A stretch of DNA of 64,000 bases from Macrostomum lignano (taxonomy: Eukaryota): assembly GCA_002269645.1 (NCBI GenBank), contig NIVC01000986.1:1-64000 (forward strand), written 5' to 3'. Positions 1-29,376 of this stretch are shown one piece after another. The notes under the pieces were generated by a model that ran no database searches, was not told the origin of the DNA, and saw only the letters and a program-made list of their open reading frames with translations. The position numbers and the translations under genes are program-made. Numbering within the stretch: position 1 is the first letter of the stretch; each line of letters begins with the position of its first letter.

Positions 1-1730
1 AAAGCTTTTCTCGATTCTTATTCTGCTGGGAAGATACTCTCAGCCTGCCTGCTAACGCTGTCTTTTGCATCTCCTGGCACCTTCTTTTGAACTCATCTTC
101 TTCTGCGGCTGAATGCGTTTAATGCCCTGCTTCTTTCTGAATTCCACGCCTCCCATTTTTTTCTGTTTTCTTCTCGGATCCTATCCTGCTGATCCTTCTG
201 CTCTTTTATCTTTCTTTCGTCAAAGAGTGTCCGTTCTCTGTCACTCTGCTTCAGCTGCTCTCGAGCTGTTTGCATTTCTTTGCTCCCGCTCTGCGTTTCC
301 TGTCAGCAAACATAGACTTCGTTTCATATTTTATATTCTGCCTGCCTGTTTGCCGTCATAGCTCAGATGAATAAATCCCTCTGCCGGTGAATCCAGCTTC
401 CATTCTTTGTTTCTGATCCATTGCACCAAGACTGCATGTTTGGGTTTTGAATGGTCTCGTGTTTACCGTGCATTCCGTGTTTGAAGTAAATGTTAACCGG
501 TAGACCTGCGTAGTCATAATGAACTGATCTACCAGATGGCAAATTGATGAGCTCGGATCCAGCACCAACTCCTATCACCTTGTACTTCGCTGCCACGCTC
601 CAGTCCTCTTCTGTGTCGTTACAGAGCTTGCTCCCGGTGTTGCCCATGCTGCAAAGTTAATGCAGTTGTTATTAAATTGAAGCAAATCAAAAAACGCACG
701 GACACTAAAAGCAGCAAAAAATGGAGAATGTATGTTCCACGTTCTACGAGCTCGTACCTCGTTAACGAGAAGTTTGCTTCCACACCCTGATTGCTGCCCA
801 CATTCGCTACTGGAGAAGGGTAAGCCATCGATAGCAGGCGCTTTGGTCTGGAGCTGACCTTCGAGCTTCATTCTAGAGCCAGTTCATTCTAGCTTACGAA
901 AATCCTTATTTTATCCTTTTTATCCAATGGGACCCCAAGGAAGGGACTTTGGTGGGAAGTCTCGACATTAACTGGTTTAATTCTAGTCAACTGGTCTGAC
1001 AAGTTATCAATTGCAGTAGTTTGTTCAAATCCCCGCATTGAAACTTAATGTATAAAAAATGTAGTTTTTTTGTAAGCAATAAAATCACAGTGACCAACAG
1101 CCTATGAGCTATGAGTATGCAGTCAATTCCATATTGGAGCTTCAGTTATAAATTCAAATCCCATGCGAGTACATTATATGCTTGCACAAAGCAATAACGT
1201 TTCTTTCTTACCTTTGGGCATGTGACGTGTATAGCAACCAGGATCAAGATTTTTAAGCAGTGATTAATCGAGAATTTTTTTATTATGTTTTATATTTATA
1301 AATGTCTTACTTACCAGTCCACTTTATCTCATATTTGCGATGGTGCAAGAATTAGTACCTTGTAGAAGGTAACTGCAAGAAACAAACAGCATGGGTTAGA
1401 AATTTAGCGCACTGTAAGTACGCAATTATAGTGTAATACACTGCAAAATGTACGCAGAAATGGCCCGCCTCCTCGGGTCCATGAGCACACAAAACTGAAC
1501 TTCTCTTTCTGTTGAACAGTACGAGCGTAGACCGACTGCAGGTACAGATGAAACTTTCTCACCTTTTAAGAAAGGATAATTTTTTCGTATAGTGAATTTG
1601 CATGCACTCTGCCTCTTAGCTGAGCCACAATAAGTGAAGTTGTCTAGATTCCTAGAACCTCCTTCCCTAACAGGTACATGAATCTACTGTCAGATAAGAT
1701 TTTCTGACATATTTTTCTCAAAAACTTCAA

Positions 1731-4700
1731 ATGAACGACGACGGGCACGACTTAAAGCACCATTTTCGCTTTCTAGTCAAAAACAAAAGATCCACAAGGC
1801 AGAATGGAAGCCTGGAAAGTGTGCTCGTCTTTGATTTGGAAGGACCTCCTTCTTTTTCGTCCAGTAGATGGACAGAAGCGAGCAAGAAGCAAAAGACAAA
1901 CCACGCGGAAGTCGAAAAATGGTTTGTCAAGTTTAGGAGGAGCCATGAGGAGGTAAGACCACTTTTGAAGAGATTTTGATTTACATCATTTTCAAATTCA
2001 AGGTGCCGCCTGTACTTTAGGTCAAAAGCTCACTGTAATCAGCAAGCTCACTAGATGCAGAACAATAATTGTAGTCAATTATTTTTCTGAAATCTATAGC
2101 ACACATACATACAGACAACTCATTTTTTGTATATAGGATCCTGTGATGCCAGTCGGCTTATTCATACTCGTACCTTTCCTTAAAGCTTGAGGCTAGAGGC
2201 TAGCTAGCCTAGATGCATAAGGCTTGTATTGTACGAGCGTACTTTACTCTCTCGTGTTGCACTGGCGCATTTGGTGGTGGTTGGCGTTGCAAATCGTCCT
2301 GAACAAGTGCAAGCAGTGTAAAGCAGGCTCCTAGCTGCAGGCTGCAGTCCAAGGACAGCGGGGGAGGCAGGAGTCGCTCATTCCTCATCTAATTAATGAA
2401 AAAACGAATTATCTTCCATTTTTTCTCCATTAAGGTTCCAAGTGAATTTTCAAACAAAACTACTGAGGAACAGTTAGGTGCGAATCAAGTGCAATACTGT
2501 GGCTAGACATGCTTTTTGGTCTATTGTCTACACACGTCATTCCTCTCTTCCCGGGAAATAGGAGTTTATGCGCCATTTTTTAGTTCTCGGCTCACGGTGC
2601 GCCGTTGCAAATGAAGAGTCCTTAGCTATCCATACTAGAAATTATCTGTACCAAGAATATGTTTTCGTTCCCTGCCATCTTCCACCTTCACCAAAATAGA
2701 CATGAGCTCGCGCTAGATGGCTTGAGTAACCAAATACTGAGATGCGATTCTATCATTCTCAAACCGCTGTGAGCGGACAATAAGTTCGGGCTTGGAGGTA
2801 AGTTTGGGACTACTTCGAACAGTGAGCAGTTTTCTCTTTGCTTGCGATTCTCCTGATCGCCCTGTGTGCTGCAATTCCGCCGAGCGTTTCAACTTGCATT
2901 GTTTTATGGAACGGGCGCTCTATAGCTCCCAGTTTATGATAAGATGACGCGGTTGTGTTCAATCAAAATTCGTCAATGCAGACCTCGAGTTCTTTGTGTT
3001 TTTTTACTCCCCATACCCACTCGCTCCAGATCAGATCTACACGTGGGATGTAGAAGAAGGGTGTTTGATTTGCGTTTTAGTTTGTAAACAGTGAGTTCGT
3101 GCTGCATTTAACCGTCTCTCTATACCCTTGTAGATTAATGTGTAGTGCGTATGCTGTGTCATCTCAATTCAGAATCGTCCTATTTCCTTTGCTACTCCTT
3201 TCAGAGGAAGGAACAATGGAGCTGCAATGTCGAAGTAAATAAAAAAAGAAGAGAAGTGTCTTTGGCAGTATTAGGCATGACAATCTTGGATAATATCAAA
3301 ATTAGTTCGACAAAGATCACGGTGGCCGACTGCAAGCAGGAATTTAACCAATTGGTCTTGGAGTCCACAAAGGGAATTAATATCTCATCTAGATGCATGC
3401 AAGGGTCCAAAATAAAACTTCTTTCTTCAGAAGTTGTGTTGGCAGAAAGCTCAGTTGTTCAGTGCTCGCAGTTGCTATGCGAATCAACGATCCGGGAGGT
3501 GTCATCCAGCCTGATTGTGTTTGGCAGCATCTTGCCGCTTCCCTGTTCAACTGAGGAAGCTGATGGCAGCCTTTCCATTCGAGTTAATGGAAATATTGTA
3601 GTAAAAATGGATGCAAAAATCGGATATTCGGACCGGCATAAAAAGGCCAAAGAAGTAAGTTTGATCAGTACTGATGGCATAACAAATGTTGGAGTCGTAT
3701 TTGCTGAACACAAGATAGAAATCTCGGCAAAGCAGATTCGCTCTCCAGTATCGAGCAAGGAGTCTGCAGCTCGTGTGTCAAAATACCTCAGTAACGCTGG
3801 CAAGCAAAGCAAGGCTGAAAGGAAAGCGAGAGACGCCGACAAGCAACTGATCGATTCGTCCACAGGTGATTCTGCAGCAATGAAAAAGCTGCTATTTTCT
3901 GGGGCTGATCCTACATTCAGAGACAAAAAAGGTGAAAGCGCCATTGCGAAGCTCAGAAAGGCGATTGCTGATCTGGGAACTGCGCCGAATCCACCAGGTG
4001 TCGCTGAAAAGAATAAACTCAATAAGAACGCGATACTCCTGAAGTGGGAGGCAAACAGTAAGGGAAAATACCAGTCACAGAGTATCTGCTGTCTTGTTAG
4101 TGAGGATGTTGCCAACCTCAGCCAGTTTCTGGGTGCAAAAGTTCATCTTGAAATTGGTGGGGATGCGTTTGTCGAAGAAAGGTCTGTATGGAAAAGTGGG
4201 TCAATCAGCGGTTGGTGCCGCGGTAGGCTCAATGTCCAAGGAGAAGTCAAGATAGAAGAGCTGAATAAATTCGAGGTTGGAAAATGCAGAGTCCAAGCAG
4301 GGGCAGAATTGTGGTTAGTGAATGGCGGTACATTAAGAGTAGTACGTAGTCTTGAAAACATTGGATGCATATACAACAGCTTCAAGAAGCTCTCAATGGA
4401 TGTTGAAAGTTTCTCACAGAGTGTAGTTGCAGCTGCTTATTCTGAGAAGGAGAACAAAGCTGAGCTTCAAATTATCACAAGGAGACCAAGTGAGTCCGTG
4501 TTTGGCAGGCTGGGTGGCTACCGAGTCACCGTCTGCGCATATGCTCGGCTTACGCTTCAGGCTGAAGTTGAGGCCATGGAGTCTTTGGTAGGTGTCATTT
4601 GTAGTCCAGCTGGTCATATTTCGCTGCAAGGAAATATTAAAATAATCGAAGGACCACTTGTTGTACATTCCTGGCTTCGAACCTGTGGCTTTGGACCTGA

Positions 4701-7700
4701 CGTAGATTTAAACTGCAGCATAGAGTGCGCGGGCATAGTCATTCCTGCTGCAACAGTGAACTTTGGTCCTAATAGCCAGTTGCTGTGTCCTCCACAGTGT
4801 AGTCCAGAATATTGCGCGAATAGCATCGAAATCGTGTTAAACAAAGCTCAAACACAAAGCGGATCAGTATGGGAGTTCTTTACTCGCGAAGTGAGCATCT
4901 TCATCGGAACTAAATTCACTCACCAAGGCAGCCTGAAGCTTTGCAAGAAAGGCGAAACAGGTCTTGAGACAAGAGAAGAGCATGGAGCGTCTGTATACAT
5001 AAGGGGAAACCGATTTGTTAACAAAGGAATGATAAGTGGCATGAAGGCCTTATGCATTGATTTAGACAGTGATTGTGAGCTAGACAGAAACCTTGAAGTA
5101 CATGACTCCATTTCAGTTTTGACAAGAAAGCATCTTACAATATCGTCAAATACTAACTTGAAGTCCGCTAACGGAAGCTTGGCGATCAGTGCAAATTTCA
5201 TAGCTAATTTTGGTGCTGTTCACAGCCACACGGATTTGATCATCGAGTCCGGAGACATTGATAATTCAGCTGGGAGCATTGCATCAGACCATGGAATCGT
5301 CTTTATTGCCTGGTTAGGGCCACAGGAAAGCTGCTACCTCGAGGGCCATGTACAAGCGGGTTCGCAGCTCGTGTGCACAGCAGCAAATTCTAATATGCTG
5401 CATATCCACGCCAAATCTCACAGCCAGCCATTGCAACTGCAAATTCCAATGAACGGCGCCAGCTTCCAATGCTTGTCAGGATCCGTGGCACTTCATTCAA
5501 AAGTGTGCTCGCCTGAGCAAACTTTTCTTCATTTAAGAGCTTCCGAATTAATCGAACTGCAGCGAAGCGTCACTTGCGACACACTCCTCGTTCAGCCGGC
5601 CGCGTCTGCTTCGGAGATGAAGCTGACAGTATCGAAACTGGAGAAAATAGCGGTGGGCTGTTTGTTAATCAGCCACGTGAACGACCGGCAGAACCAAAAT
5701 GCTAAAGCAATTGTAATTGAAGGCCAGCAAGGGTCAAAATTAAAATGCAACAAATTTATGGGGTCTGAAATCAGTCTTGAGCTGAAAATAGCCGCTGAAA
5801 TGGATATGCCAAGCCAGATTATGGCACAGCAGCTGTTTATTTCACAGGACTTGACCGTTCAAAGCCAGCAAGGCGTGTGCGGAGAATTTCTAGTCAGCTG
5901 CGAAACTGAACTGAAGATTAGTGGCAATGCGGAGTTCGTTGGGGCAAGCAGCTGTCTTGTGAGAGCTCGCAGACTGTTACTCTGTGATGCGGCCGTACTT
6001 CGCCTCTTGCGTCTGACACACGTGACTATTCTGGCAAAGGAAGTCGTGACTAAAGGTATTTTTTTCGCTTCTTTAAAAGATAAAGACCGTGCCGCGATAG
6101 TGATACATGCGGATGAGTTTTATTGTCATGGATTGATTCAGTTTGGAAGTGAAAGCTCGACAAATCTCATTTTGCATGTCAACGAATGCACAATAAGCGG
6201 TCGCATCGTTCACGGCAATCAGCCATCGCTGATGCTGATTGAATTCTCCAAAAGTGCCACGGTTCTGCCGGAGAGCGAAATTGATTTAGGGAAACTTCTG
6301 CTAATTGGGGGATGCGAAGGTACATGCAATTTTAAGTCTGCAACCCTTTCAGTGTCTGAGTTAATGGCTATAAAATCTGTGCGCCGGTTGTCCTGGGAGA
6401 CCAGCAAAGTCAAGCTGAACCAGGCACGCTTCATTGTAAAAAACGTTGAGCAGGTCGCTCTTAAAAAAACTGAAATCATCTGCCCTCAAGGTGTTGTGCT
6501 TGACGAGTCACTAGTGGGAAGCTATGAAGTGAGCACAGCTAAAGTAAAAATCTGTGCTCAAAAGTTCACCCTGGAAACTGGTTCCGAGATTCGCAACATT
6601 GATACACTTGAAATTCACGCCTGGAAATGCGCCCGTTTTGAACTAGGCAGCAAAGTACAATTTTGCAATAACTTTTATCTAAGAAGCAGATTCATTTACT
6701 TTCAGGCGTCCGTACACGATACGGGTGGCATTGATTGTCAAGCGGAAAGTATCGTAGTGACTGGGAGGGTGGATTGCTTTAGATCGCTGTCCATTGCTGC
6801 ATCTCAGCTGCTGCACAATCAGGGAACGTTGAGTGCAAAAGATGTCAGACTCGATGCTACCGCTAAGCTGCACATGTGCTCGAGCAGCGAGGATCAGTTC
6901 TACCCAGCGATAATTTCGGCAAAAAGCTCACTGCAGCTGAATAGCTACATCATGTTGTCTATATATGCCGAACTACGCAGCCCCACAATAGCAGTCAAGA
7001 ACATTGCTCACTTTGGCTTTGCTGAGCACGTGTGCACAACAGGCGAATCTAAAGTTGGGCAACAAAGCGCGAGTCGTGAAGAAGTTGAAAAATTCCTGGG
7101 TGCCAACTCTACAGTTGTCCCCCAGCCAAACAGCGAGATGCAAAATCTATTTGAATTCATGGTGCTTGAATCGGTAAAAATGTTTTTAGAAGATCACAGG
7201 CGGTGTGCACAGCTCGTCTTCACTGCCACTAAATGGTTGGCAGAGACGCTAAAACGAATCCGGACTTCTAGCCCTGAGCAAAATTCAATGGATGAATTCG
7301 TTTGTTTAGTCGCGAAGCTCACTAATGCGGTCAGAGAAGGCTCGCCTGAGCCAGAAGAAGAACTAATCGCCTTCTGGGAAGAATTATGCCACAGCGACTG
7401 GCTTCCGCTAAAGCTTCAAGGGATTTTCGAACGCAGCCACTGCCTGTGTCTGGTGGGGCCAACTCGAATAGAAGCGGCGAAAATAATTCACGAGTGCAAA
7501 TTCTGGCGTTGCGATGGGTCCATATCCGTAAAGGACGGAGTCCTCATCAAGGCTGTCCACGTGCAGCTGTGGTCCGAACAGCCAACAACTTGGCTTGTGT
7601 GCACTGCAGATGTGCACATTTTAGCGGATGAAAAATTGAGAGTTCGATTCTTGACATCAAGCGAGGGCTCAGTCACTCTGAGGGGTGGGGTAATCGAAGC

Positions 7701-10700
7701 ACACGGAATCTGGTCTGCAGAGACCATGTTGATGTCGACTGATCAGAGTCTGGTGATTGACGAACTCCTTGGTGAGACTGGTGTCTGGATTTCGGCTGTG
7801 GATGCCACGGTGACTAACGCAGCTGCCTGGAAAATGCACCTTCTGTCTGAATCAGGAAGTATAGAAAACAGTATAATTACCAAAGCACTGGAGGTAAGTT
7901 GTTCAGAAGAATTTAATGCAAAGCTAATTTTTACAAAGCATGCGCACCTGCTTGCCTCTGAGAAATCCGGCATGGGAAGGATAAAGTTGGAGTCTTCTAA
8001 AATAAAAGTCTGCATTGTTTCGAGCGACTTTTGCCAGACGCTGAAGTGCTCTTTTGTCGATTGGCATTGTCTGATTACACGCGACCTGTTACTCAGATCA
8101 TCGAAAGTGCATAATATTTTCGTAGCTAATGTTTGCAATGAGCTTACTATTACTGCCGGTTGCCACCTTGAGAAATTACAATGCAGAGTACACCAGACAC
8201 TGAGCATTGACCAACTCAAAGCACAAGATATATCTGTGGCTTGCTCAGATTTCAAGGCTTCCTTTTTATCGGCGAGAACATTAGAGGTTGTTGCTACAGA
8301 AACCATTACAATAAGCGACTCCAGTATTATGGACCTGACGGCTCGCTCAGGCAACAATTTGGAGATTTCAGGCAATACGGCTAAGACAGACCTCGGAACT
8401 GCAATCTGCGTGAGCGGAAAATCTCTCGCAATAATAAATGCTTACGCTACTGAAAAGCTGGTCGTATGTTCCAATTGCGTTAGCATTAGAGGCACCATGC
8501 TTTCGGAGCTCCGAGTAATTTGTCCGGGCAAAGGTGAAATCGTCATTGAGAGCTCGATGGTCGGTAATGATTTCGTGGCTCTGTGCCGGAAACTTGCCTC
8601 AAAGCAAAGCAAATTTGTTCGGTTGTTCTTCAGGGGCAAGCAGTTAAGCGTGTTCCAGACAGAGGCAAAGCAGATTTATGCAGATGCTGACGAATGCTTC
8701 CGCCTGTCAAAGTCAAGTGTCTCAGAAAATCTCATCGCTTGGTCCGAAGCTGCGCATTCATTTTTAAGTTACCTGGGCTCAATGAAACTTCGCCACTGCT
8801 CAGTGGGATCTACAGTGAGAACGTGCGAAGTGGAGGGGAACATGGAGATTCTCTGTCGCATGCTCAAAATGTCCGATTCCAGCGCAAATTCTCTCATGAT
8901 CCTGTCAGGAGGAAATACCAAATTGGAGAGGCTGATGATTACGAATTCCTGTGATGCTGCCATTGTAGGCTCAACTACCTTGAAAGATTGTCAGCTGGGG
9001 CAACTAAATCTGCTGACTGATTCCTCACTGCAAGTCAGTAAACTTATCGTTAATGGCGGTGCTTGCATTGCTGCCAAAGGCGATGCAGCACTTCGACAAA
9101 TCATGGTGGGAAGTCTAAATATAGACACGAGGAACTTCCGTCTGTTCGTTTCTGACCTCAATTCTGCCGGCCTGAGTCATTTGAAGTCGGGGAGATTGTG
9201 CGTGTCCGGATGCCAGTGTCTGTCGGATCTGCAGCTGACAGCTGTGTTCTCAGCCCGAGTTTCTCAGTGCTTCGCCACATGCTCTGTCGTTATTCGGGGC
9301 GCCGAATGCGGGCTGCTGAGAGTAGGGCTAATGGAACTACAGGCAGAAGAGCTGACCATTTTGAATTCCCTCTTCGTGGTAGTTAGTTCCATAGAAGTTT
9401 TGGAAAATGCCGTCTTTAAAAACATTTTGGGTGATGTACGAATCAAGTCAAACTGCAGTGTGCATAATTTACAGGTGCAGACAGAAGGCATTTTGGCAGT
9501 CAGTAACTCTGAAGTTGGTCAGATTACATCCCAGTGTCGGCGCTGCTGCATCTCCACCACGTGCGGACTCCAGAAAAACTTCTTCATTCGAGCTGCGGAA
9601 ACAGAGCCCGGACCCACTGTTTTACTGGACACAATATCGAGAATCAACTTGATAGATGCTGCCGGAAGAGAAATTCGCCTGATGGAATGCGTCTTTAACC
9701 TCGGCATCATTCGGACTCACGCACGTGTCCGATTGGAGGGCTGCATGGTCAAAGCGAATGTCGATATTCAGAGCCCCATCGTGAGCGTGTCCGACACAAG
9801 TTCTGATAAAATCCGAATTAGTGACTCAGAATTCTGTGAATTCAAGGAGGTAAAACACGCGCAGATCTGGACGAAGACTTGGGAACTGAAGCTTTTGGAC
9901 TGCTGTCTTCAGGAATTGCAAGCGGAAGTCACTGGTACGGCACGAGTTACTGGTTGCGCGTTCATCGAGAACCTCCTGCTCAAAGCCATCAAGGTGGAAA
10001 TACGCGGTGTAATGGTTCAAAATCGCTTGCAAGTACAAGCGAGGAGGCTTCAGCTGGATGGCAGAGATCCAGACAAGAAGAATGAAGGATACTCTAAAGA
10101 GCTTATGGTGATCTCTGACTCGAGTACGTGCGGTGAAGCAGCATCGGTTTGTGTAAGTGATATCCGAATCGTTCGATTGCAAGTGATCAAGAAACCCAAG
10201 ACCTTAAAACTTGCTCGGGTGACGGTTGAGAAAGCCGTTGTCTTGCCCGCCAATGAGATTGAGCTAGATAATTTTGTCGCCCCGGAGCTATTATTGGACG
10301 CAGATCCTCTGAACTGTGCGATCAATTCAGGATCCATCCATGTTCTTATTGGCTCTGTGCGAAATCTGTCCGTGCTGAAATCTTCATTGAATCGAGTCCG
10401 AATTTCATGCGACACTCTGGTCCTAGCTGATGGAACAGACGTTCAGCAGGAGCTGATAGCTGAAGTAAGGGACGTGCGGATCTCAGACTCTAAATTTGGG
10501 TCAGTTTTTATTTCGCCAGAAGTCCCATACGAAAACAATTGCACAGCTATCGCAAAGATTCAAAGTGTCGTAACGGAATCTACCTTTCAAATATTAGACT
10601 TTCGGGATATTTTACTCGGCAATTATTGCATATTCAATGGCGAATCAATACTAAAGTGCCGTACATTCAAAGCAACGGAGTTCAGCCGATTTGACTTAGA

Positions 10701-12594
10701 TGTGACTATTGACTGTGAGTCTTGCGAATGGAAAGATCCAGTGTTATGTGCATCCTTGACACTACGCTGCTGCACCGGATTCATCGAGAAGGCGAAGGTG
10801 TCCAAGAGCTGCGATTTATTTGTGTCTGGCTCATTGCGAATTGCCGATTGTCAGTTCACCGAGTGTCTTCAGTCGTTCGGAAAGCAAGCAACGCTGGAAC
10901 TCGTGAGCCCAAGGCTTGGCCGGTTCAAGTTGGAGAGCCATCGACTGACGCTGATGGGCGCAGACGTACAGGACGGATCCTCGACATCCTCGATAAGCGC
11001 GGCCAGCAATGCGCACCTTAGTCGATGCCAGATTGGCGGAAACCTGCAAATAGCATCAAGATGCGTCAGAATCGACAGTCATACTTCAGTCAGCGAGTCG
11101 CTTCGAATAGAATGCTCTGACGGCCTGCACTTGGAGGACACGACTGTGGGCTCACAACTGACAGCCTGTGCCAAAGGCCAAATCTCAGTGAACTCCGGAG
11201 TCACAGCTAAAAATTTTCTCATGCGCTCCGAAATCATTCCAACTTTTCAGCGTGCAAAAAGCTGCAAGTTTGAGCAACTAAAAATAGATTGTTCGAATTT
11301 GAATACAAAAAACTTGATTTGCTTTCTCAGTGAATCGAACTTACAGTGCGTAAGAGAGCTCCTCTGGCTGAGCACTAAACTCGAATTGGATATTCGTAGC
11401 ACTGAACTTGCTCTGGTGTTCGGCCTAACCCTATCTGCCTCATCAATCAGCATCAGCAACTCCAGCCTGATGTCCATCAAGCCGATTTCTTTGATAGCAA
11501 ACAATGGTACAATTGCGCTACAGGAATACACAATAGAAGCTCCACATATTAAACTGGACTGTCAAAATTTGCAGCGAAACAACGGAAAGTACACCCAGCA
11601 TCTCGGATTGGTTGGTACGGTTGAGATAAATAGCAGCGCCCAGCAATCTTTTGAAGATTTTTTAAGCGCTGAGATAAAACTTGATACGCACGCCAGCTTT
11701 CCCAACCCAAATTCAGTCCGAAGCATTTCGATGAGAATAGGCGAATCTTCTGCAGTAACTCCCGAGTTTGCTAGCATTGAGTATCTTCAGCTGTCCGAAG
11801 AAAATTGCTCCCCGAATGGAACTCAGGTATTCTCGAGTACCGAAAGAACTAGGGCCCTTTGCGAGCCCCAACAACAGTCAGCTGCAATCGATTTCAACTC
11901 TGATGCAGCCACAGCCTGCGAACGAACGGGAGGCACCAAAGCCTCCGATCCGGATTGGCAGAAGTTCGATAAAGAATGCCGCTCGGCCGAGGCAGAAATC
12001 CGGGGGGCAATGGACACAGTGCCCACTCAGCTTAACTGCGACTTTATTTTACCGAGTATTGACAAATCACGACGGGAGTTTGAGAAGTTAATGAAGACAG
12101 CAGAGGCTGAGTTTAACCTCGAGTTCCAAGCATCTGATGATGTCTCGGATAGAAGCCGGAGCTGGCGAGACTTCAGGAATGTCTGCTCAGAATGCGCAGT
12201 TCCAGAAGATCCAGAAGATTCAGAAGATTGCTTTCAGAAAGCCAGAGAAGCACAGCGGTCTTTTCTGAGCAGCTGCACGAGCATTCCTGCGAGTACCTCG
12301 GCCATTTGGGAGAAACTGCCCAGCCATCTGCCGCAGGAGCTGGAGAGCTACATGAGCCGCACTCAGCCACTGGCGCGTCGGTCCGAGCTTCGCGTGACCA
12401 TCGGGCCCTCCGGAGTGACCAGCATCGAGGGCGTCATCGCACGGGCCACCTTCTCCAGCGCTGACGTCATGTTGGGCCCCGCCTTTCTGGTGCCGATTTC
12501 CCGAGATCCGGAGGAGCTCTCTGCCAGGAGATTCGACACGAGCAAGCCAGATTTCTTCAAAAACTATTACCAAAGTGACAGCGCTTCAGCTTAA
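1731..12594 (+). CDS. Giant (~3,200 aa) beta-solenoid protein with haemagglutinin-like repeats and one ankyrin-like motif; model: exon 1731-1952 + exon 3205-12594
   Basis: Open frame 3145-12594 (3149 codons). The upstream ORF 1731 (in-frame TAA at 1695) ends ...SHEE at a phase-0 donor GAG|GTAAGA (1952/1953). A phase-0 acceptor TTCCTTTGCTACTCCTTTCAG|AGG lies at 3204/3205, so the join is in frame. Ankyrin-like KKLLFSGADPTFRDKKGESAI at ~3880-3950; FHA-like turns FVNKGMISG, IANFGAVHS, IDNSAGSIAS, LHNQGTLSA; ~17-19-aa beta-coil periodicity downstream. Confidence 0.8.
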
Positions 12595-13817
12595 CGGCAC
12601 ACTAACGAATTTCAGTAAGTGCTTGATTATTTTGTGTCGGGGTGCATCTGCACTGCCTAGCCATCTCGGGCTTGCAGTCAGTGCACCAGTCACTGCACTT
12701 TTATCCCTTCAGTTGTTTAGGCAGTTGTGTACGCGCCACCCACCCCACTGCCTGTCTGGGCCAGCCTGCTTTGGCTGGCTGCGCCCTCTGCTCGCCCTGC
12801 CCCTCGCTTGCCCCACGATTGGCTGGCGGCCCAGTTGATCAATTAGATTGCTTTTTTTCTCCAATCACGACCCCTTCGCGTTCTGCAAGTCGTGAATTTT
12901 GTAATTTTGGCCTCTGCATACTATCGCCAGTAACTGAGAAAAAATCAGTATGCACTCAAAAGCATTCACTGTCAGAATTGGAGAGAGTCCGCCCCTACCG
13001 CCGCCACTGTCACTGCTGTGTCAAGTCAAAGAGTGAGTCGCGTCTCTTATTTATTTGCAGGTTTGGCTGGGTTCGAATCGCGCCATAGGGACGGCTGACA
13101 AAGTCTCGTGACGCGATTCCACGCTTGGAGTCTGAAGTCAGTTCGGCCAGTTGACTAACGCCATCTCTGTGCTCGTCCGCTGAATTAGTTCAGGTTACGA
13201 TCCGGCCTTTCACGACAATTATATGCAGTTTGACTTCTATTTTATTCAAGGACATGCGGCTCCACAAAAGTACAGCCATTTAAAAGTTTCCTTTAAGTCC
13301 GATTTTAAATACTTTACGCACTACCCCCTTTGGTTCATTGATACCCTTTGATATCTTTTCATGTGTATAAGCGTTACTTTTTTAAGTTCACTTATTGTCT
13401 TAGAAATTTTAAATGTTCAATTTTCAACTTATTAACAATTCCATTATCAATTATGAAGTGACAAAAACCCAATAGAAACCAGCAATACGAGTATTCCGTG
13501 TGCGAAGTGCAACTGATTGAAGTAAAACAAAATGAGCATCATAGTTCTGAAATATTTCTCAGAAGAAAATTAATTCATCAAGTTACCTTCAGTACATGAT
13601 TAGGGTATACTCGTACGACAAACACTTGAAGAATTTCGGTTAGACTTCGTTTTTTACTTGCATCTCCGTCCTGTTTTTTCTGTTGCAGTTCGTTCTTTTT
13701 AGATCAAATTTCTTCTTTCACTCCAGACTCTTATTTAGATTCTCTTTCTTTCCTGGCTTCCGGTTTTTCCTTGTTCGGCCTTCATCGTTTGATATTTTTC
13801 TGATTTGGTTCCTCATT

Positions 13818-14003
13818 CTGCTTTGGATCCCCTTTCTTCTTTGAATCCTCTTTCTTATTTATATCACCATTCTTCTTTGGATCCTTTTTCCTCTTTGGAT
13901 CCTCTTTCTTCTTTATATCACTTTTCTTCTTTGGATCCTCTTTCCTCTTTGGATCCTCTTTCTTCTTTATATCACTTTTCTTCTTTGGATCCTCTTTCCT
14001 CTT
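13818..14003 (-). repeat. 51-bp Lys/Asp/Pro-rich tandem repeat (KKKEDPKRKEDPKKKSDI), ~3-4 copies; probably the former C-terminal tail of the MGAT1 pseudogene
   Basis: Repeated TTCTTCTTTGGATCCTCTTTCCTCTTTGGATCC on +; ORF 13782-14054 shows the peptide repeat. Confidence 0.7.
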
Positions 14004-14072
14004 TGGTTTCTCTTTCTTCTTTGATGCTCTTTCTGCTTCTTCCGCACGTTCCACGGGTAAAGGATCTTTTTA

Positions 14073-14290: not shown

Positions 14291-14513
14291 TACTTATAGG
14301 AAGCCATTTGTCCGGAACAGTCCAAGTTCTTCTCAGCGAAATCACGGAAATTCCGAGGATGGAGGCGCGAGGGGCGCCAAACCACACCTCTGGAATGGCG
14401 CCGATTGTCTCAGATATGCCGATAAATTCTTCCGCTGTAGCGTAACAAAGACGCACAGCCGATGGCGGCTTCTTCTGGGACAGCAGCGTCGAAAAACTCG
14501 TCACAGGTAGACT

Positions 14514-15912
14514 TGACTTACTTGACTAAGCTGCAGGGCTGTCCCGGGGGGACACAGCGGGAAGGCGCGAACGCCCATTCGGCTAATCCCTGAACGGCCG
14601 ACGCGTCGCTATGGACGAAGGGTTGGCGCCGCCCAGGGAGGTCCCCCAGTGTCGCCAGCAGCTATAGTGCTCTCTGGAAAGGAGAGTTCAGCCCTGCGGG
14701 TGGCCCGGAGGTAGCGCATGAGCTGATTAAAGTTTTCGGGTTTGCACGTTTCAGTACGAGCTAATAGATGTGTGTGGCCCGAGGTAAGTGAGTCTGGCTC
14801 GCGTAAAGGCGGGACAGATGCTGACGAAATGCTCAGCGGTTTCGTCACCTGAGTTACAGAAACTGCAGATGGCGTTGGTGGCGTGGCCCTGCAGGTACTG
14901 GTGCCTAGAGAAGCAGCCGTGACCTGAGAGGGTCATGGTGGCAGCCCGGATGTCTCTGCGCGAGAGGCGCAAGAGGAGCTTCCGGAGCTGGTGAGAGGGC
15001 TGAGGGACAGCGCCTCTGGATGGCCTGCAGGTAGTGCAGTTTGCCCAAGTCGAGCGGTGCTGAGTTCTGATCCACGCTTTGATGCGCGAGTCGATGACAC
15101 AGCCGGGAATCGGGACAAGGGGTTCGGGACCGAGAGAGGAGCCGGAGGCGCCAACTTTCGCAAGGGCGTCAGCCAACTCATTTCCTCGGATCCCCACATG
15201 CCCCGGAACCCACTTGAGGGTGATTTTGTTGGTGGAGCCCAACATTTTGAGGAGTTTGATACAGTCGAAGACTTTCGCAGAATTGGTGCTGCAGCCACTG
15301 ATGGCGTGCAAGGCAGCTTGGCTGTCCGAATGGAAAATGATGTTCTTACCGGTTAGGCCAGTGGCGAGGAGCTCTGCGATGTAGGAGCTGATGGCGAGAA
15401 CTTCATTTTGGAAGACACCGGAGTTGACCCCAGTGTACTGAGCGTGGGTTGCGATGACCCTCCCGTTCAGGAAGATTCCAACACCAAAAAACGGTGTTGG
15501 CTGACTGCTTAGAACCATCGGTGTAGCAATGAAGCTCACCAGGGTTCCAGTGGTCATTGATGGTATCGCGCGAGTCGATAGCTACGGAGTAGCGTTGTCT
15601 CAGGTTGAGCTTTGAGGCAATGCCGTCGGTGAAGATGCGATTGGCCTGACACTCGTTGAGAAAGTTGAGGCACAGGTCGCTATGCGGGACGAGGTTCCGC
15701 TTAGCAGGTGCCCTCATGTAAAGGAATTTGACACCGGCATCAAGTAAACGCCGGGTCGTTCTAGCCGCCTCACCCCTGACGAAGAGGTCAAGAGGCGGTA
15801 GATTAAGGAAGGCCCCCACGCCGGCAAAGGACGTGGACTTGGTGGCGTTGCAGATGAGCCCACACGCTCTGCCCTGGATCGTGTTGAGAAAATCGGCATG
15901 GCTTTTGATCAG
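14514..15912 (-). mobile_element. 5'-truncated I-group (Loa/R1-like) LINE with RNase H and C-terminal CCHC
   Basis: YTDGSK, VFQNEVLAI, HSDSQAAL, WVPGHVGIRGNELADALAK and CSFCNSGDETAEHFVSICP. 8-bp TSD GGTAGACT at 14506-13 and 15913-20; short repeat tail (TAAGTCAAG). One frameshift separates ORFs 15403-15819 and 14751-15557. Confidence 0.9.
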
Positions 15913-16677
15913 GGTAGACTGCGAGAAAACTTTTCTAGCTTATTATCAGCTGAGCGACCAATTATCTTGTCAATGGCGCTGTCGAGCAGAGTGACATTGA
16001 ACCTGCTTAGAGTCATTTGACTCAGATAGTTGTGGTAGAACGTCGAACTGTACCCGCTTTTTTCCTGACGCGACTCGCCCACCGTTCCGCCCGATGTTGA
16101 ACGTCCGGGACAGCTCGGGGCGCACGCAGACCAGCCGATTATTCATCATGTAGTGCCTCAGGAAGCCGTCGTAATCCGTCTTCGGCCAAACTTTCCTGAC
16201 CTGCAGCCAGTGGCGTCGGTTGATCATCAAGCCTTGATCATCAAGCCTCTTGTCATCGGTTAACTTCAACAGTTTAACGTCCGGAGTCTCGATCTGCTGC
16301 AGGACCTCCTTTGTTTTCTTTTCTGTGCCATCGAGCGATGCCATGATGCGAAATCCGCTATCAGGCTTTTGAGAAACCAACTGTCTCACCAGCTGATGCA
16401 CTTCTGGCCTCTTAGCAGATAGCATGACCACAGCAATCTCCTTGTTCTGTTGGGCATCTGGCGCTCGAACCGACGAGTTCGTTGAGTTCATTTGATGAAG
16501 ACGAACTGAGGAGTTGCTCAAAGACATATTATAACTCCGCATATGACGAAAATAAGTCAGATGTGTTGGTATCTTTGACTTTTGCTTTTCTGTAGTCTAT
16601 AATATTATTTTCCAGGATGCAGCAGACCCAGGGCCAGTAACAAAACCACGATTAAAAGTCTTTGTCTGCGCGTTGCG

Positions 16678-17060
16678 CCGAGAGCCGAGAGCCGAGAGCC
16701 GAGAGCCGAGAGCCGAGAGCCGAGAGCCGAGAGCCGAGAGCCGAGAGCCGAGAGCCGAGAGCCGAGAGCCGAGAGCCGAGAGCCGAGAGCCGAGAGCCGA
16801 GAGCCGAGAGCCGAGAGCCGAGAGCCGAGAGCCGAGAGCCGAGAGCCGAGAGCCGAGAGCCGAGAGCCGAGAGCCGAGAGCCGAGAGCCGAGAGCCGAGA
16901 GCCGAGAGCCGAGAGCCGAGAGCCGAGAGCCGAGAGCCGAGAGCCGAGAGCCGAGAGCCGAGAGCCGAGAGCCGAGAGCCGAGAGCCGAGAGCCGAGAGC
17001 CGAGAGCCGAGAGCCGAGAGCCGAGAGCCGAGAGCCGAGAGCCGAGAGCCGAGAGCCGAG
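16678..17060. repeat. (GAGAGCC)n heptamer array, ~54 copies
   Basis: Perfect 7-bp repeat; 126 codons of RLSALGS in ORF 16597-17106 equals 378 nt. Confidence 0.98.
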
Positions 17061-18054
17061 CGAAGGATGCTATTTTTCTACAAAATCGAATTAAAGAAAG
17101 AAGCATCGATCGCAGCGAATTTTTTTACTCAAGTGGCCCTGAGTAGCTGAGGTTGCCAGCGCGTAGGGAAGTCTGATGGTCTCTTTTGCCTTAGAGTTTC
17201 GCTGACTCACGCACTAATGATGCTTACGAAGGCTAGGTGCTAAAGATGCTCACTGAAAATGCCGCAAGAAAGTGCTATATAGGCATAGAACAGTTTATGT
17301 TTTTTATGCACCAGTAACTGGTGTATAGGGTTTAGAAACCCACAAGAATCGGCCACATAAAAAGAAGCCAAATTGAAAGAACGCCAAGCATGGTGAGGTT
17401 AATTAGTTCAAAAAGTAAAAGTGAAGATAAGGTACCCAAATGGAGCGATTCTAGAGAGGTCAGTAGGGGAGGCATAAGCATGATAAGAGTATTACGGCCT
17501 CAATCCAATCCAGATAGCCGGCAAAGCGAGAAAACCTCAACGCCAGCCGACGTGCCGCATTTTGGGTGTCAAAATAAAAACTGCTGAGTTCGGCCCACAG
17601 TGCACTCAGTGGGCGGCGCATTGCATTCGTTTTCTGCCATCGCAAACGAACCCCTTGATTGAAATCCACAAAGTTAAATTTCGATTTTGGCCATTCCCAC
17701 CGCATTCATACTCCTTCTGCGAGCTATGATCTCACTGAAGAACTGAAGAAAAAGATTTATAAAAAGCTTTAAAAGTACAATTGGAGCAAAGGATGCAGGA
17801 AGGGAATTGTTACTGAGGCAAATTTTGGAAATGCAAATGGAAATTTTCTTCCTGAAAAAAACATGCTTGAAAAATCTATTCATGAGCAGTTTGTTCTCTG
17901 TAGTCTTGAGCCATGAATAATAACTTCTTTGTGAGAATGCCACACAGACAAGGCCCGTTTGCATTTCATGTTCAACCGTTTGCATTTATGAAACACGCGA
18001 ACACTAATGTACTTGGACTGGCACTCGCGAATCGAGAAGTATCTAATTTTATAA

Positions 18055-19869: not shown

Positions 19870-22800
19870 GACGGGTGAAGGAAATGCTTCGATCCAACCC
19901 GAGCAAGCGTCAACCACAATTAGCAGATTTCCTGCTTCTTGTACGAATGCCCAGTCAATGTGGACCCTCTGGAATGGTCTTGCTGCGGGTGGCCAGTGAT
20001 CCCTCATTTTCAATAGGCGTGGCCGCAGTCGATTGCAGACGGAACACTGGTGTACGAAACTGCTCGACGTCCTTCTGCATGCCGGGCCACCAGCACGATA
20101 GCGAAAGAAGGCTATAGGCTGCAGCCACACCTGAGTGGGTGTCGCGGATGGCATTAAAGGCCTCTCTCCGAAGACGCAGAGGAATAAAAACTCGTCGACG
20201 CATGTACAGTAGTCCGTTCTCGAGCGTCAGGCACTCCGAAATCTTCTTGAAAGGTAACTCAGCTTATGAACAGCCTTTCCAATCACCTGAGCGAATTCGG
20301 CTCAAAATTCTCGGCATGAGGGGATCGCGAGCCAACTCTGAAGCAATGCGGGTGGAGAAGATAGTCGAAGTTTCAAAGATGACGCAGTTGATTGCCTAAG
20401 CTGTTTCGGGGGGTTCTTCGTCTTGCTTGCCGTTCAGAAAAGACAGCCGAGACAGAGCGTCGGCATGAGGAATTTTTGAGCCTGGGATGTATTTGAGTTC
20501 AAAATTAAACTGCATTAGCGAAAGTGCCCATCTACTTATTCTCGCCGAGGTGCCGGTAGGAATGCTGCCACCATAGAGCCGGAGCAGCGGCTGATGGTCA
20601 GTGTGGATCTCAAACTTTCGACCTTGTAGGTAATGCTTTAGACGAGAGACAGCCCAGACAATGGCTAGAGCCTCTCTTTCAATATTGGAGTAATTTTCCT
20701 CTGCCTTCGATAGAGTCCTGGAAATATAAATCACAGGGTGACCCTCCTGAGTCAGGACGCCGGCAAGAGCCCCTTTAGATGCATCAGTGGTCAAAGTGGC
20801 TTCCTTATCAAGACTGTATGGCTGAACAACCGGCCGAGAAGAGAGCTCCTTTTTAAGTTGGTCAAATGCCCGTTGGCATTCGTCGGTCCACACGAAGGCG
20901 GCACCTGACTTACGCAGCTTGTTAAGGGGAGCGACCTTTGATGAGAACTCTGGAATCAGGCGCCCAAAGAAGTTAACAAGTCCGAGAAACTGCTCATTCT
21001 CCTTTTTGGATGTCGGCGGAGCAATTTGGCGCACTTTCTTAACCAACCGATCGTCTGGCCAGATGCCAGCGGCTGAAACCTTGAAGCCAAGGAAAGAGAT
21101 CTCGTCGCTCATATTGATGCATTTGCTTTCATTGATCGTAACTTTCTTTTCCAGCAGCCGAGTCTTGACAGCCTTAAGACGCTTGTCCAAGGTGGCAGAA
21201 TTTTCAGCGAAAACTAAAACGTCGTCCTGGTAAATCAAGATGCCTTTGAGATCGGCCAAAATGCTCTCCATCGCTCTTTGAAATATATAGGAGGCATTTT
21301 TCATCCCCATTTGAAGACGCGTGGCGCGATATAGGTCCCGGGATGTGTTGATGTTGGACAATTCCTGTGCCTCCTTATCCAGAGCGATTTGCTAATATGC
21401 CGATCTCAGATCTATCTTTGCAAACTTTATTGCATTTTTTAGTTCGGAGAACAGGTGCTCGATTGACGGTATAGAGTAAGACTCTGACTTGATCTTTCCG
21501 TTTATATGTACTTTATCACCCAAACTACCGGCGAATCGTTACTCACAGGACCTTCGATAGTCTCGATGATGCCCAGCTGTTGTAGCCGGTCGAGCTCCGC
21601 GTTAATCTTCTCCTCCAGCGCAAGTGGCACAGGCCGAGCTCTGCAGAACCGGGTTGCGCTCCGTCAATCAGCTCCATCCGCGCAGTGATGCCTTTGATGG
21701 TAGGCAGGGGCTCCACAGAAGGCAAAGACGATTTCGAATTTGTATGAAAAGCTGCGTCTGCATCAAGCAGGTTTCGTCCTAGGAGACCAAAAGGCTTCTC
21801 CGCAGGTTGCAGCCGGCCTCTCATTTCGATGGTCGCGGAAAGCTTCCCGAGTGTTTTCATTGTGTGTCCGTCATAGGCCTCGAGCTTGCGATGACATGCA
21901 GTAAGAACAGGACAATTGAGAGACTTCCAGATTTTGCTTGAAAGCACGGAGACGGAAGCCCCAGTGTCGAGCTGCATGGGCACTTTAGTACCATTGACTA
22001 CGATGTCCTCCGATGCTTCAGCTATAGCGTGAACGCTGTTCGTGTCCGTAAGGTGAAGAACTTCGGATTTATTGTCATCACAGGCCTCATCAGGTCGGAC
22101 ATCCGAGTGATGCACTGGTTTCACCCCAGCCGAGCGGCAAACTGAGGCAAAATGATTGCGCTTTCCGCATTTTGAGCAGCTTTTGCCGTAAGCCGGGCAT
22201 TTGCCGAACGGATGAGACTTGCCACAAAACTTACAGTTTCTCGCAATAGAGTTGCCTCCAGGTGCTCGACTCTCTTTGGCATAATGAAAAAGATCACCAT
22301 CTACCTGGGACTGCTGCATCTTCGCCGCAGCTCTCTCGTGTTGAACAAACGACGATACCTGCTCAATGTTCCTAACGAGGTCGACAATATCCGAGATTGG
22401 CAGTTCCTTCGTTTGCCTTTGTCCTTCTTCGCCAGACACGCCAGTCGAGGTCTGAATTGCACCCAGCACGCGCCTCTGAACTTCTGGATTGCTGATTCCC
22501 GCAATGAGCGCCAATATCACCATCTCGTCCTCCGGGCTTGTGCAAGTCTTCAGGTTGTCAAAGGCGCAGCGAGAGGCTGCCTTGCGCAGGCGGGATAGAA
22601 AATCCGTGATGGACTCACCAGCTGCCTGGCGCAGGCGGGATAGAAAATCCGTGATGGACTCACCAGCTGCCTGGCGCAGGCGGGATAGAAAATCCGTGAT
22701 GGACTCACCAGCTGCCTGGCGCAGGCGGGATAGAAAATCCGTGATGGACTCACCAGCTGCCTTGCGCAGGCGGGATAGAAAATCCGTGATGGACTCACCA

Positions 22801-23390
22801 GCTGCCTTGCGCAGGCGGGATAGAAAATCCGTGATGGACTCACCAGCTGCCTGGCGCAGGCGGGATAGAAAATCCGTGATGGACTCACCAGCTGCCTTGC
22901 GCAGGCGGGATAGAAAATCCGTGATGGACTCACCAGCTGCCTGGCGAAGGCCAAAGAACCTCGTGCGCTCAGCTATCATTATAAAAGACTTCTTGGGCTT
23001 TAAATAGTTTATCGCAGTTTCAATCTCTTGGAATAGCAGCGTCTCGATTTCCTTCGGCGCAACAATATGAGTCAGCTTCTCAAGTGTGTCCAGTCCACAC
23101 AAGGCCAGAAAGTTGTCGGCAATCGTTTTAGACGATTCTGAATCTTCCCACTTCTTCGAGCGAGCAAGAGCTTTGAAAGCTTTCAGCCAGCTTAAGGCGC
23201 GGTCTGCCTCCGCGAGATTTAAGGTGTCGAGCCGCGACGCCATTGTGATGACTCGCTTGAAGCAATTACATGCGGTGAAGCCAGCTAGGGACGAGCCCAG
23301 AATTCAGATTTATTTCAATAAAGCCAAAAAGTTGTCTCACACTCCTGACTACTAACTTGGGTACTTTTAATCGCTGCAATACTTTAGCAC
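19870..23390 (-). mobile_element. Ty3/Gypsy (Mag-like) LTR retrotransposon, 3'-truncated in integrase and decayed
   Basis: Gag from 23243 with zinc knuckle CSKCGKRNHFASVC; protease LDTGASVS; RT DLRSAY*Q and YQDDVLV; RNase H TDAS...NYSNIEREALA; integrase H..H..C..C and RVHIDW...VVDACSGW, cut at ~19870. PBS-like TGGCGTCGCGG directly follows ...CATCACA; AATAAA at ~23311-16 on -. The outer LTR boundary is uncertain. Confidence 0.92.
22583..22943 (-). repeat. 8 x 45-bp in-frame tandem repeat inside gag ([Q/K]AAGESITDFLSRLR)
   Basis: Units start every 45 bp from 22581 to 22896 on +; order in coding sense is Q,K,Q,K,K,Q,Q,Q. Confidence 0.95.
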
Positions 23391-24223: not shown

Positions 24224-25642
24224 ATGGACTCGACACCGTTCGGTCTACGAGTTTCAAAATTCAGTTTGCTGCTACGCCAGGGTCTACGGCGTCTTTCGTA
24301 TAGAAAAAAACTTGGCCTCGTCTTGATGTTTGTCATCTTGACTGTCCTTGGATTTCTAGTTCCTTTTCTGGTTCTGCAAAGCCACATAAAAAAGACAGAA
24401 AATCCAAAGCCGAAAGAGACTGAAGAACCGGACGATAATTTGCCAGAGTTTCAGGAGCCTGATTTTTTTCGGCTGAATTCAATGAACGCAACGGATGAAC
24501 CCCCCGAGCAAAACCAAGGCAGAGACATCGCTGTGGTGGTGCTGGCCGCAAGGAGACCAGAAGTGCATCAGCTGGTCAACCAGCTGCTTGCTCAGAAGCC
24601 GGCGAGCGGGTTCCGCATCCTGATGTCGCTGGATGGAGCAGAAAAGCAAACAACTGCTGTGCTGCAGCAGATAAAATCCAATGAGGTCAAACTGTTACGC
24701 TTAGCCGATGACAAAAGTCGCAACTTTACTGCGTCAAACGATAGCTACGTGAAGATTGCGCGGCATTACCTGCGCGTGTTGGACTACCTGATACTGAGGC
24801 TGAACTTCTCCTATGTCATACTGATGGAGGACGACATGCTGATTGCGCCGGACTTCTACCAGTATTTTCGCTCACTGCGAAGAGCGCTCGACTCCGACGA
24901 CAGCATCTTCTGCGTGTCCGCGTGGAACGACAACGGCCAGATTGGCCTCGTGACCGAGGACCCGCAGCTGCTGCACCGGACTGACTTCTTCCCTGGACTC
25001 GGCTGGATGATCAACCGGCGCCACTGGCTGCAGGTCAGGAAATTCTGGCCGAAGACGCAATACGACGACTTTCTGAGGCACTACATGATGAATAACAGCC
25101 TCGTCTGCGTGCGTCCCGAGCTGTCCCGGACGTTCAACATCGGCCGGAACGGTGGCCGAAGCAGCGAGCCCGGAAAGAGCTACGCGTACGGCGACATTTT
25201 CTACCACAACTACCTGAGCCGGATGGCGCTGAACACGTTCAATGTCACTCTGACCAAGAGCGCCATCGACAAAGTGATCGGTCGCTCAGCTGACCACGAC
25301 CTGGACAAGTTTGCTCGAAGTCTGCCGGCTATGAACGTATCGCAGCTGTTGTCGATGCCGGTCCAGGAGTTACCGCCGGCGGTTCGCCTTCGCTACGCAA
25401 CAGTGAATGACTTTATCGAGCTGGCGCTGAGCATCGGCGCCATCCCGGAGGTGTGGTTTGGCGCTCCGCGGGCCTCGATCCTCGGCATCTCCATGGTGTC
25501 AGTGCGCGGCAGCCGAGTGTTCATTGTTCCGGATAAAAGACTGCCTGTTCGAAAAAAGATCTACATACCGCGGATGAAGCCGAAGCCGAAGCCGAAGCCG
25601 GAGCCAAATCCGGCTCCCTCGCGTCGTTTTTGGTTCTTCTGA
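24224..25642 (+). CDS. MGAT1: Alpha-1,3-mannosyl-glycoprotein 2-beta-N-acetylglucosaminyltransferase (GnT-I, GT13), single exon, 472 aa
   Basis: Type II anchor LGLVLMFVILTVLGFLVPFLVL; YVKIARHY, ILMEDDMLIAPDFYQYF, CVSAWNDNG, RTDFFPGLGWM, YDDFLR, RPELSRTFNIG. Confidence 0.93.
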   Translation: MDSTPFGLRVSKFSLLLRQGLRRLSYRKKLGLVLMFVILTVLGFLVPFLVLQSHIKKTENPKPKETEEPDDNLPEFQEPDFFRLNSMNATDEPPEQNQGRDIAVVVLAARRPEVHQLVNQLLAQKPASGFRILMSLDGAEKQTTAVLQQIKSNEVKLLRLADDKSRNFTASNDSYVKIARHYLRVLDYLILRLNFSYVILMEDDMLIAPDFYQYFRSLRRALDSDDSIFCVSAWNDNGQIGLVTEDPQLLHRTDFFPGLGWMINRRHWLQVRKFWPKTQYDDFLRHYMMNNSLVCVRPELSRTFNIGRNGGRSSEPGKSYAYGDIFYHNYLSRMALNTFNVTLTKSAIDKVIGRSADHDLDKFARSLPAMNVSQLLSMPVQELPPAVRLRYATVNDFIELALSIGAIPEVWFGAPRASILGISMVSVRGSRVFIVPDKRLPVRKKIYIPRMKPKPKPKPEPNPAPSRRFWFF

Positions 25643-27996: not shown

Positions 27997-28046
27997 CCCC
28001 ATGCGCTTGCCTCTTATTTAGGGCCATCTAACTCGGTTACCCATTC

Positions 28047-29346: not shown

Positions 29347-29376
29347 TATTTTATTTTAAATTTTCTTTTTAAAAAA

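Follow-up and report, generated by a model that had tools for sequence, protein, structure and literature searches.

A single reading frame of 9.45 kb, uninterrupted over 3,149 codons of the plus strand (3145-12594), lies within the first 64,000 nucleotides of contig NIVC01000986.1 of the flatworm Macrostomum lignano (assembly GCA_002269645.1; this whole stretch is referred to below as the window), and its predicted product is a giant protein that has no detectable relative and carries a hydrophobic rhythm of 6-7 residues. In the interpretation that we favour, and to which we give an even chance, the frame belongs to a genuine gene, restricted to its lineage and encoding a long, irregular rod of the beta-solenoid type that acts as a spacer or scaffold; we infer its splicing and the fold, shape, location and function of its product. 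The gene would probably consist of two exons, or be trans-spliced at 3205, and would encode some 3,100-3,200 residues folded mostly as one long irregular beta-solenoid, in which short strands every 6-7 residues would set about three hydrophobic anchors in each coil of 18-20 residues. The solenoid would run in three stretches (about 2,560 residues in total, amounting to some 130 coils and a rod of about 60 nm), be broken by a degenerate ankyrin-like helical pair and by a helical insert of 125 residues, and end in an acidic tail. A rigid structural spacer or scaffold is its most likely role, in which the helical inserts and the tail would be candidate interaction sites; provided that its N-terminus is modelled correctly, the protein would be intracellular. 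The parts of this model are as follows (aa, amino acid positions in the spliced product).

1731-1952, plus strand: putative exon 1, 74 codons opened by an ATG, basic and hydrophilic, without signal peptide, ending in the donor GAG/GTAAGA (1952/1953)
1953-3204, plus strand: putative intron of 1,252 nt, GT...polypyrimidine-CAG, as read from the sequence
3205-12594, plus strand: giant exon of 9,390 nt, TAA stop included (frame open from 3145)
3205-3717, plus strand (aa 75-245): N-terminal beta region, with the clearest rhythm (period 6.6-6.75 residues; p<0.003 for aa 101-200)
3727-3945, plus strand (aa 249-321): ankyrin-like helical stretch, including AAMKKLLFSGADPTFRDKKGESAI, about two degenerate repeats
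4108-7074, plus strand (aa 376-1364): beta region 1, period 6.75, containing h-x-N-x-G-x-I turns like those of filamentous haemagglutinin (FHA)
6784-6870, plus strand (aa 1268-1296): faint match to TIGR01731, 18.0 bits in a 767-aa chunk, E 0.0022
7075-7452, plus strand (aa 1365-1490): helix-prone insert, with helix propensity and without a peak at 6-7 residues
7453-11652, plus strand (aa 1491-2890): beta region 2, period 6.25, with weak internal similarity units of 50 residues
11653-12591, plus strand (aa 2891-3203): C-terminal region, acidic and Ser/Pro-rich, without solenoid rhythm

The frame is the longest open one in the window. Over the same span each of the other five frames is open for at most 232 codons, and the probability of meeting no stop across 3,149 codons, calculated from the base composition of the window, is about 1e-77. 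It holds no tandem or dispersed DNA repeats, and its GC content is higher at first than at second codon positions (GC1 > GC2), a coding-like pattern. An earlier annotation of this DNA made from its letters alone (the sequence-only reading) had described a 9.4-kb uninterrupted exon, which is borne out as a single frame, and had started the gene at 1731, which proves to be an ATG opening a 74-codon exon whose donor is in phase with the predicted acceptor at 3205. The acceptor (3204/3205) is pyrimidine-rich, ends in CTCCTTTCAG and is in phase 0 like the donor. A phase-matched GT-AG splice joining 1952 to 3205 is thus predicted and plausible; the spliced model (1731-1952 plus 3205-12594) gives a product of 3,203 residues, and the length of the putative intron fits the mean of 1.1-1.4 kb for M. 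lignano introns (PMC5730564). Open reading frames (ORFs) the size of exon 1 are frequent in the flank, and for this reason exon 1 is placed by inference only. Alternatively, the acceptor at 3205 could be a trans-splice site, with translation starting from the in-frame ATG at 3274. In either start model a signal-peptide-like N-terminus is absent, in agreement with the sequence-only reading, and the protein has no transmembrane segment (maximum Kyte-Doolittle 19-mer 1.56). Past the stop codon lie a perfect GTAAGT donor (12615-12620, 21 nt 3' of the stop) and an 18/54-nt tandem repeat (13804-14038) whose minus strand would encode a Lys/Glu-rich peptide.

The giant protein is an orphan. Pfam gave nothing meaningful for the whole protein (E<=1) and nothing for ten chunks of it (E<=10), a sequence search of the PDB gave no match, and neither did a word-index search of 5.8 billion proteins with the whole ORF, its N-terminal 632 aa and its C-terminal 604 aa. 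Exhaustive phmmer searching of 1.84 billion cluster representatives with aa 900-2099 returned 0 matches at E<=1e-3; the helix-prone insert (aa 1365-1490) has no homologue, though covered by this search, and the C-terminal 600 residues have neither a family nor a homologue. Scans of viral sequences (including IMG/VR), prokaryote genomes and metagenomes found no relative, and we found no account of such a protein in Macrostomum in the literature. The sole match among 43,686 library models was that to TIGR01731 (NCBIfam), the 20-residue repeat of FHA, whose cut-off is 18 bits; with the whole protein the score was 16.2 bits, below the cut-off, and a second stretch scored 7.2 bits. The family and homologue searches therefore uphold the earlier statement that this giant gene matches no animal family, and in place of a clear match to a known metazoan family they yielded only a sub-cut-off match to an FHA repeat.

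Evidence bearing on the fold comes from the spacing of the hydrophobic residues. In averaged power spectra of the LIVFMC pattern set against block-shuffled nulls (95th percentile of the null maximum about 3.5), each of the three beta regions showed one dominant peak: at 6.5-6.75 residues in aa 75-245 (z 6.8-7.1, with multiples at 13, 20 and 27), at 6.75 residues in aa 376-1364 (z 6.2-7.1) and at 6.25 residues in aa 1491-2890 (z 5.1-5.3). Pooled over their 2,560 residues, the three regions peaked at 6.5 residues with a z of 9.5. Hydrophobic pairs were rarer at lags 3 and 4 (z -6.6 and -5.8), which excludes helical structure, and commoner at lags 13 and 19-20. The lags enriched in region 1 (6, 8, 12, 14 and 20) imply three anchors per coil of about 20 residues, and those enriched in region 2 (5, 13 and 18) a coil of about 18-19 residues. 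Around the hydrophobic anchors, charged residues are found at +/-1, Ala and Gly at +/-2 and Gly, Asn, Ser and Asp at +/-3-4, a pattern that describes short strands connected through turns; hydrophobic pairs are not enriched at lag 2, and runs of h-x-h-x-h are underrepresented (z -4.2), which argues against long amphipathic strands. The robust signal is the third harmonic of the coil, at 6.25 residues; BLOSUM lag scans in 100-residue windows barely exceeded the null, and scanning up to 400 residues revealed no domain-sized period (80-120 residues). The regular beta-coil of 17-19 residues described in the sequence-only reading was accordingly overstated, in that no repeats alignable by BLAST were found and lags 18 and 19 reach a z of only 2.7-3.1; what stands of it is the 6.25-residue harmonic.

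Proteins analysed in the same manner as controls behaved as follows. A TpsA protein from a Salmonella plasmid, with a TpsB gene immediately upstream, gave a single peak at 7.0 residues with lag 21 enriched, and the passengers of the Escherichia coli autotransporters Ag43 and YfaL gave peaks at 9.0 and 6.25 and at 9.25 and 7.0 residues, respectively; lags 3 and 4 were depleted in all three. No significant peak was seen in the adhesin YeeJ, an immunoglobulin (Ig)-domain array, in the jelly-roll capsid, polymerase, GNT-I and recombinase encoded elsewhere in the window, or in the giant protein's own helical inserts and C-terminal tail. With respect to the proposed beta-solenoid, then, the spectrum matches that of three beta-helix controls and is unlike that of five non-solenoid proteins, a controlled comparison that strengthens the case for a solenoid; the points that count against this part of the earlier description, a low-confidence model and a peak shared with a YadA-like adhesin, are taken up below.

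The composition of the protein (36% LIVFMC, 2.2% Pro) is that of a folded rather than a disordered chain. N-x-G-x-[ILVM] occurs nine times against 2.0 expected (z 5.1, a 4.5-fold enrichment), mostly preceded by h-x-h, as in FIANFGAV, IDNSAGSI, LLHNQGTL and LIANNGTI. The N-x-G-x-I turns that had been placed at about 4900-6900 are indeed enriched there (three against 0.5 expected) but are not limited to that interval, copies being scattered over the whole protein. Likewise, the ankyrin-like motif reported near the N-terminus stands only in part: against a hand-written ankyrin consensus, aa 249-321 score 55, a value reached by 0 of 500 shuffled versions (24.8 +/- 5.3), but the stretch has no Pfam match at E<=10 and the resemblance is weak. 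The helical insert described at about 7140-7430 corresponds to the helix-prone segment at 7075-7452, which lacks the solenoid rhythm, and the acidity noted at about 11900-12300 is seen in the C-terminal 313 residues, which hold 52 Asp and Glu against 34 Lys and Arg.

Internal similarity of the giant protein is weak but real. Self-BLASTP detected no internal repeats; the top internal score was 12.9 bits, compared with at most 8.2 bits in shuffled versions, and 39 pairs of chunks scored above 5 bits, compared with 0-8. Loose units of 50 residues can be recognised, such as RCQIGGNLQIASRCVRIDSHTSVSESLRIECSDG and TCEVEGNMEILCRMLKMSDSSANSLMILSGGN, and a hidden Markov model (HMM) seeded on aa 2678-2740 gathered 6-10 units against 1-5 in shuffles. 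The profile of these units matched in the PDB only the leucine-rich repeats of SKP2 (E 0.94). Another HMM, built from the N-x-G-x-I turns, failed to extend to further coils, a hand-made regular expression for the coil was not enriched (z 1.8), and the leucine-rich-repeat core LxxLxLxx(N/C)xL occurred twice against 1.5 expected, with no leucine-rich-repeat match in Pfam. Run without an alignment, AlphaFold2 modelled aa 660-1010 as an all-beta structure of 24 strands with one 4-residue helix at the C-terminal end (predicted local distance difference test, pLDDT, 45; predicted template modelling score, pTM, 0.46); the same procedure applied to aa 1489-2688 gave an unusable model (pLDDT 31). Of the 25 PDB folds that Foldseek placed closest to the model of aa 660-1010, none of them significant, about 20 are solenoids, the first being the FHA secretion domain at a non-significant E of 0.9. 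The structural check proposed with the sequence-only reading thus gave an all-beta model with mostly solenoid neighbours, at low confidence and without a significant match.

The protein had been called FHA/CdiA-like, and in several respects it does resemble the TpsA exoproteins (FhaB/FHA, HMW1, HpmA/ShlA, CdiA). Like them it is very long, mostly beta and non-globular; it has one hydrophobic period of about 6.5-7 residues, a third of a coil of 19-21 residues, with lags 3 and 4 depleted; and it has occasional h-x-N-x-G-x-[ILV] turns and a faint TIGR01731 match. It could be the domesticated descendant of a bacterial TpsA of the FHA/CdiA type, acquired horizontally, diverged, and since provided with an intron and the composition of its host. 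The enriched turns, the identity of the only library match, the single peak without a companion near 9 residues (a feature of the TpsA control but of neither autotransporter) and the non-significant top Foldseek neighbour all point in that direction. The hallmarks of the family are nevertheless missing. We found no N-terminal Sec signal or two-partner secretion (TPS) domain (Haemagg_act; no Pfam match and no NPNL or NPNG motif), no tandem above-threshold FHA repeats (Fil_haemagg_2, TIGR01731), no VENN, ELYN or related motif in the giant protein, and no TpsB (ShlB/FhaC) gene, the flanks of the giant gene holding no ORF of at least 150 aa on either side; the VENN-plus-toxin arrangement and the immunity gene are lacking as well. 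Pairwise phmmer against TpsA returned no reportable score for the real sequence, with shuffled versions at about -4 bits, and the exhaustive search of 1.84 billion representatives with aa 900-2099 gave no match at E<=1e-3. Unlike the TpsA control, the protein is poor in Gly (6.1 vs 13%) and Asn (4.3 vs 6.6%), rich in Cys (4.2 vs 0.2%), in Leu and in hydrophobic residues generally (fraction 0.36 vs 0.21), and interrupted by helical inserts; its gene is animal-encoded with an apparent intron, and its GC content and codon positions look host-like. N-x-G turns, moreover, are a common convergent feature of beta-helices. We therefore regard capture of a TpsA gene as highly improbable: as a statement of family membership 'FHA/CdiA-like' does not hold, and what the protein shares with FHA is its geometry and a few h-x-N-x-G-x-I turns; it cannot be recognised as belonging to the family.

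Other beta-helical proteins offer partial parallels. Autotransporter passengers (Ag43, YfaL, pertactin class) share the peak at 6.25-7.0 residues and the depletion of lags 3 and 4, but have an additional, stronger peak near 9 residues that is absent from the flatworm protein, which also lacks a C-terminal beta-barrel translocator (no Pfam match). Region 2, with its period of 6.0-6.25 residues and enriched lag 18, recalls the left-handed beta-helices of LpxA, LpxD, GlmU and gamma-carbonic anhydrase, in which lag 18 corresponds to three six-residue sides per coil, and LpxD, GlmU and a gamma-carbonic-anhydrase-like chain are among the non-significant Foldseek neighbours of the model of aa 660-1010; the handedness of a beta-helix, however, cannot be read from sequence, there is no Hexapep match in Pfam, and those proteins are short enzymes rather than rods of several thousand residues. 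Parallel beta-helices of the PbH1/CASH type occur in animal proteins (fibrocystin/PKHD1, CEMIP, SHCBP1, FBXO11), also in the cytosol; they are right-handed, span a few hundred residues and are recognised by Pfam and SMART. Unlike these, the giant protein matches none of them in Pfam and would be about ten times longer.

Several observations weigh against a solenoid gene of the kind that we favour, the first group of which concerns the fold. The lag of the 18-20-residue coil itself reaches a z of just 2.5-3.1; the periodicity is locally uneven, with p<0.05 in 12 of 63 windows along the protein; a YadA-like trimeric adhesin used as a control also peaked, at 6.75 residues, so that the signature marks a class of solenoids or rolls and not FHA specifically; both AlphaFold runs are of low confidence (pLDDT 31 and 45); Foldseek found no significant match in the PDB or BFVD; and a Cys content of about 4% is high for a cytosolic protein. 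The low-confidence prediction, the unalignable repeats, the weak coil-length lag and a hydrophobic fraction (0.36) above that of the secreted beta-helix controls would all suit a real protein with another beta-rich or mixed fold, such as an array of small beta-domains or a groove-forming rod of the VPS13/BLTP type. We consider this unlikely, though it is the alternative to which we give most weight, as no period of 80-120 residues was seen, the Ig-array and jelly-roll controls lack the 6-7-residue peak, the behaviour of lag 2 and of h-x-h-x-h runs (z -4.2) is unfavourable to it, no Chorein, VPS13, BLTP or other Pfam match was obtained, and the leucine-rich-repeat core is not enriched.

The second group concerns expression and conservation. 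No AATAAA or ATTAAA occurs within 1.4 kb past the stop (12592-14050), and the protein has no homologue in which conservation could be tested. Exact-product look-ups with three alternative starts of the giant ORF found nothing on record, as did those with two neighbouring ORFs, and the giant product is absent from protein collections that include the GNT-I protein of this same contig; the giant ORF therefore appears to lack a GenBank gene model. The GenBank annotation of M. lignano is derived from transcripts, with non-coding and repeat-overlapping models removed (PMC5730564). Absence from such a transcript-based, repeat-filtered annotation leaves expression of the ORF unsupported and, together with the lack of a canonical poly(A) signal, would agree with an unexpressed or recently silenced relic devoid of current function. 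Such a relic seems very unlikely to us given that a frame of 3,149 codons cannot long persist open without selection, that it is non-repetitive at the DNA level and hence not the product of a recent expansion, and that GC1 exceeds GC2 as in coding sequence. Filtering of repeats would also explain the missing model if the ORF belonged not to the host but to an unrecognised element, whether repetitive, mobile or endogenous viral. An intact ORF with neither homologues nor annotation suits a young selfish element, and the window is rich in mobile DNA, with a long terminal repeat (LTR) retrotransposon, a Polinton/Maverick element and a recombinase of the Crypton type. Yet there are no terminal direct or inverted repeats around the giant ORF within 30 kb, no second copy of it within the window, no transposase, reverse transcriptase, integrase, polymerase or capsid domain in or beside it, and no relative in IMG/VR or BFVD, and the junction at its 5' side is canonically intron-like. 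An origin in a mobile element is for these reasons quite unlikely.

The DNA of the locus is that of the animal, and is neither bacterial nor contamination from the diatoms on which it feeds. The contig carries animal genes and animal-type transposons, and the animal locus proposed in the sequence-only reading is confirmed by the DYRK2-like exon and transposons of this type on a Macrostomum lignano contig. Contamination by diatom food was ruled out by the length of the contig (392 kb) and by the closeness of that exon to human DYRK2. The other features recognised in the window are the following.

20396-23243, minus strand: LTR-retrotransposon fragment with gag/aspartyl protease and reverse transcriptase-RNase H ORFs
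24224-25642, plus strand: intronless GNT-I gene, annotated in GenBank at identical coordinates of NIVC01000986.1 (M. lignano project Mlig_3_7)
28834-29346, minus strand: ORF with a parvovirus-type phospholipase A2-like domain, Polinton/Maverick-like element
29341-30372, plus strand: rve integrase of the same element
30972-33476, plus strand: protein-primed PolB of the same element, with an endonuclease VII-like stretch
37045-37644, minus strand: A32-like packaging ATPase of the same element
39484-40770, plus strand: double-jelly-roll capsid ORF of the same element
50278-51309, minus strand: DYRK2-like protein-kinase exon (146 bits over 76 residues against human DYRK2)
53067-54587, minus strand: Crypton-like tyrosine recombinase ORF (Phage_integrase and DUF3504)

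The Polinton/Maverick-like (adintovirus-like) element as a whole spans 28834-42000, and the gag ORF of the LTR-retrotransposon fragment includes a 45-nt tandem repeat (22486-23025). An inverted copy of the GNT-I (MGAT1-like) gene, diverged and broken, is found 8-11 kb from it (14338-16542, minus strand), the arms being 70-91% complementary. An RNase H ORF (14751-15557) and an ORF for a fragment of GNT-I (15970-16542) are located between the arms, and a 14-nt unit repeated in tandem about 40 times forms a near-perfect array at 16593-17145. Two arms of 177 nt each (26831-27007 and 27870-28046), 100% complementary, flank 862 nt in which there is a 284-aa ORF without a Pfam match; this palindrome (26831-28046) could be a foldback or terminal inverted repeat element or an assembly palindrome. 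Divergent from the giant gene is a 94-aa ORF (363-647, minus strand) that starts MGNTGSK, an N-myristoylation-like start, and has neither a Pfam match nor a gene product on record. Scanning the window against Rfam and for tRNAs gave no matches.

Beta-helical rods of great length typify the secreted adhesins and toxins of bacteria as well as phage tailspikes, and we know of only short beta-helix domains in animals. The giant protein of M. lignano is probably a new beta-solenoid rod, a known kind of architecture in an unexpected host. A stronger version of the reading that we favour, which we put forward tentatively and think less likely than not, is that of an expressed gene whose product forms a single three-sided beta-helix, unbroken over more than 2,500 residues, founds a new family and serves as an intracellular spacer of about 60 nm bearing ankyrin-like and helical modules; to our knowledge this would be the longest beta-solenoid rod in an animal. 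Its origin might then lie in convergence on the geometry of FHA or in a very old capture of a bacterial TpsA, by analogy with the teneurins, for which an ancestry among bacterial toxins has been proposed. Were the ORF silent, or a component of a mobile element, it would be a curiosity of a repeat-rich genome. The case also shows how a gene of this size, probably functional, can escape a transcript-based flatworm annotation, and, if the interpretation is true, an animal rod of some 130 coils with neither signal peptide nor relatives would add a new kind of structural component to metazoan cells and offer a clean case in which to set convergence against ancient gene transfer in the origin of a fold.

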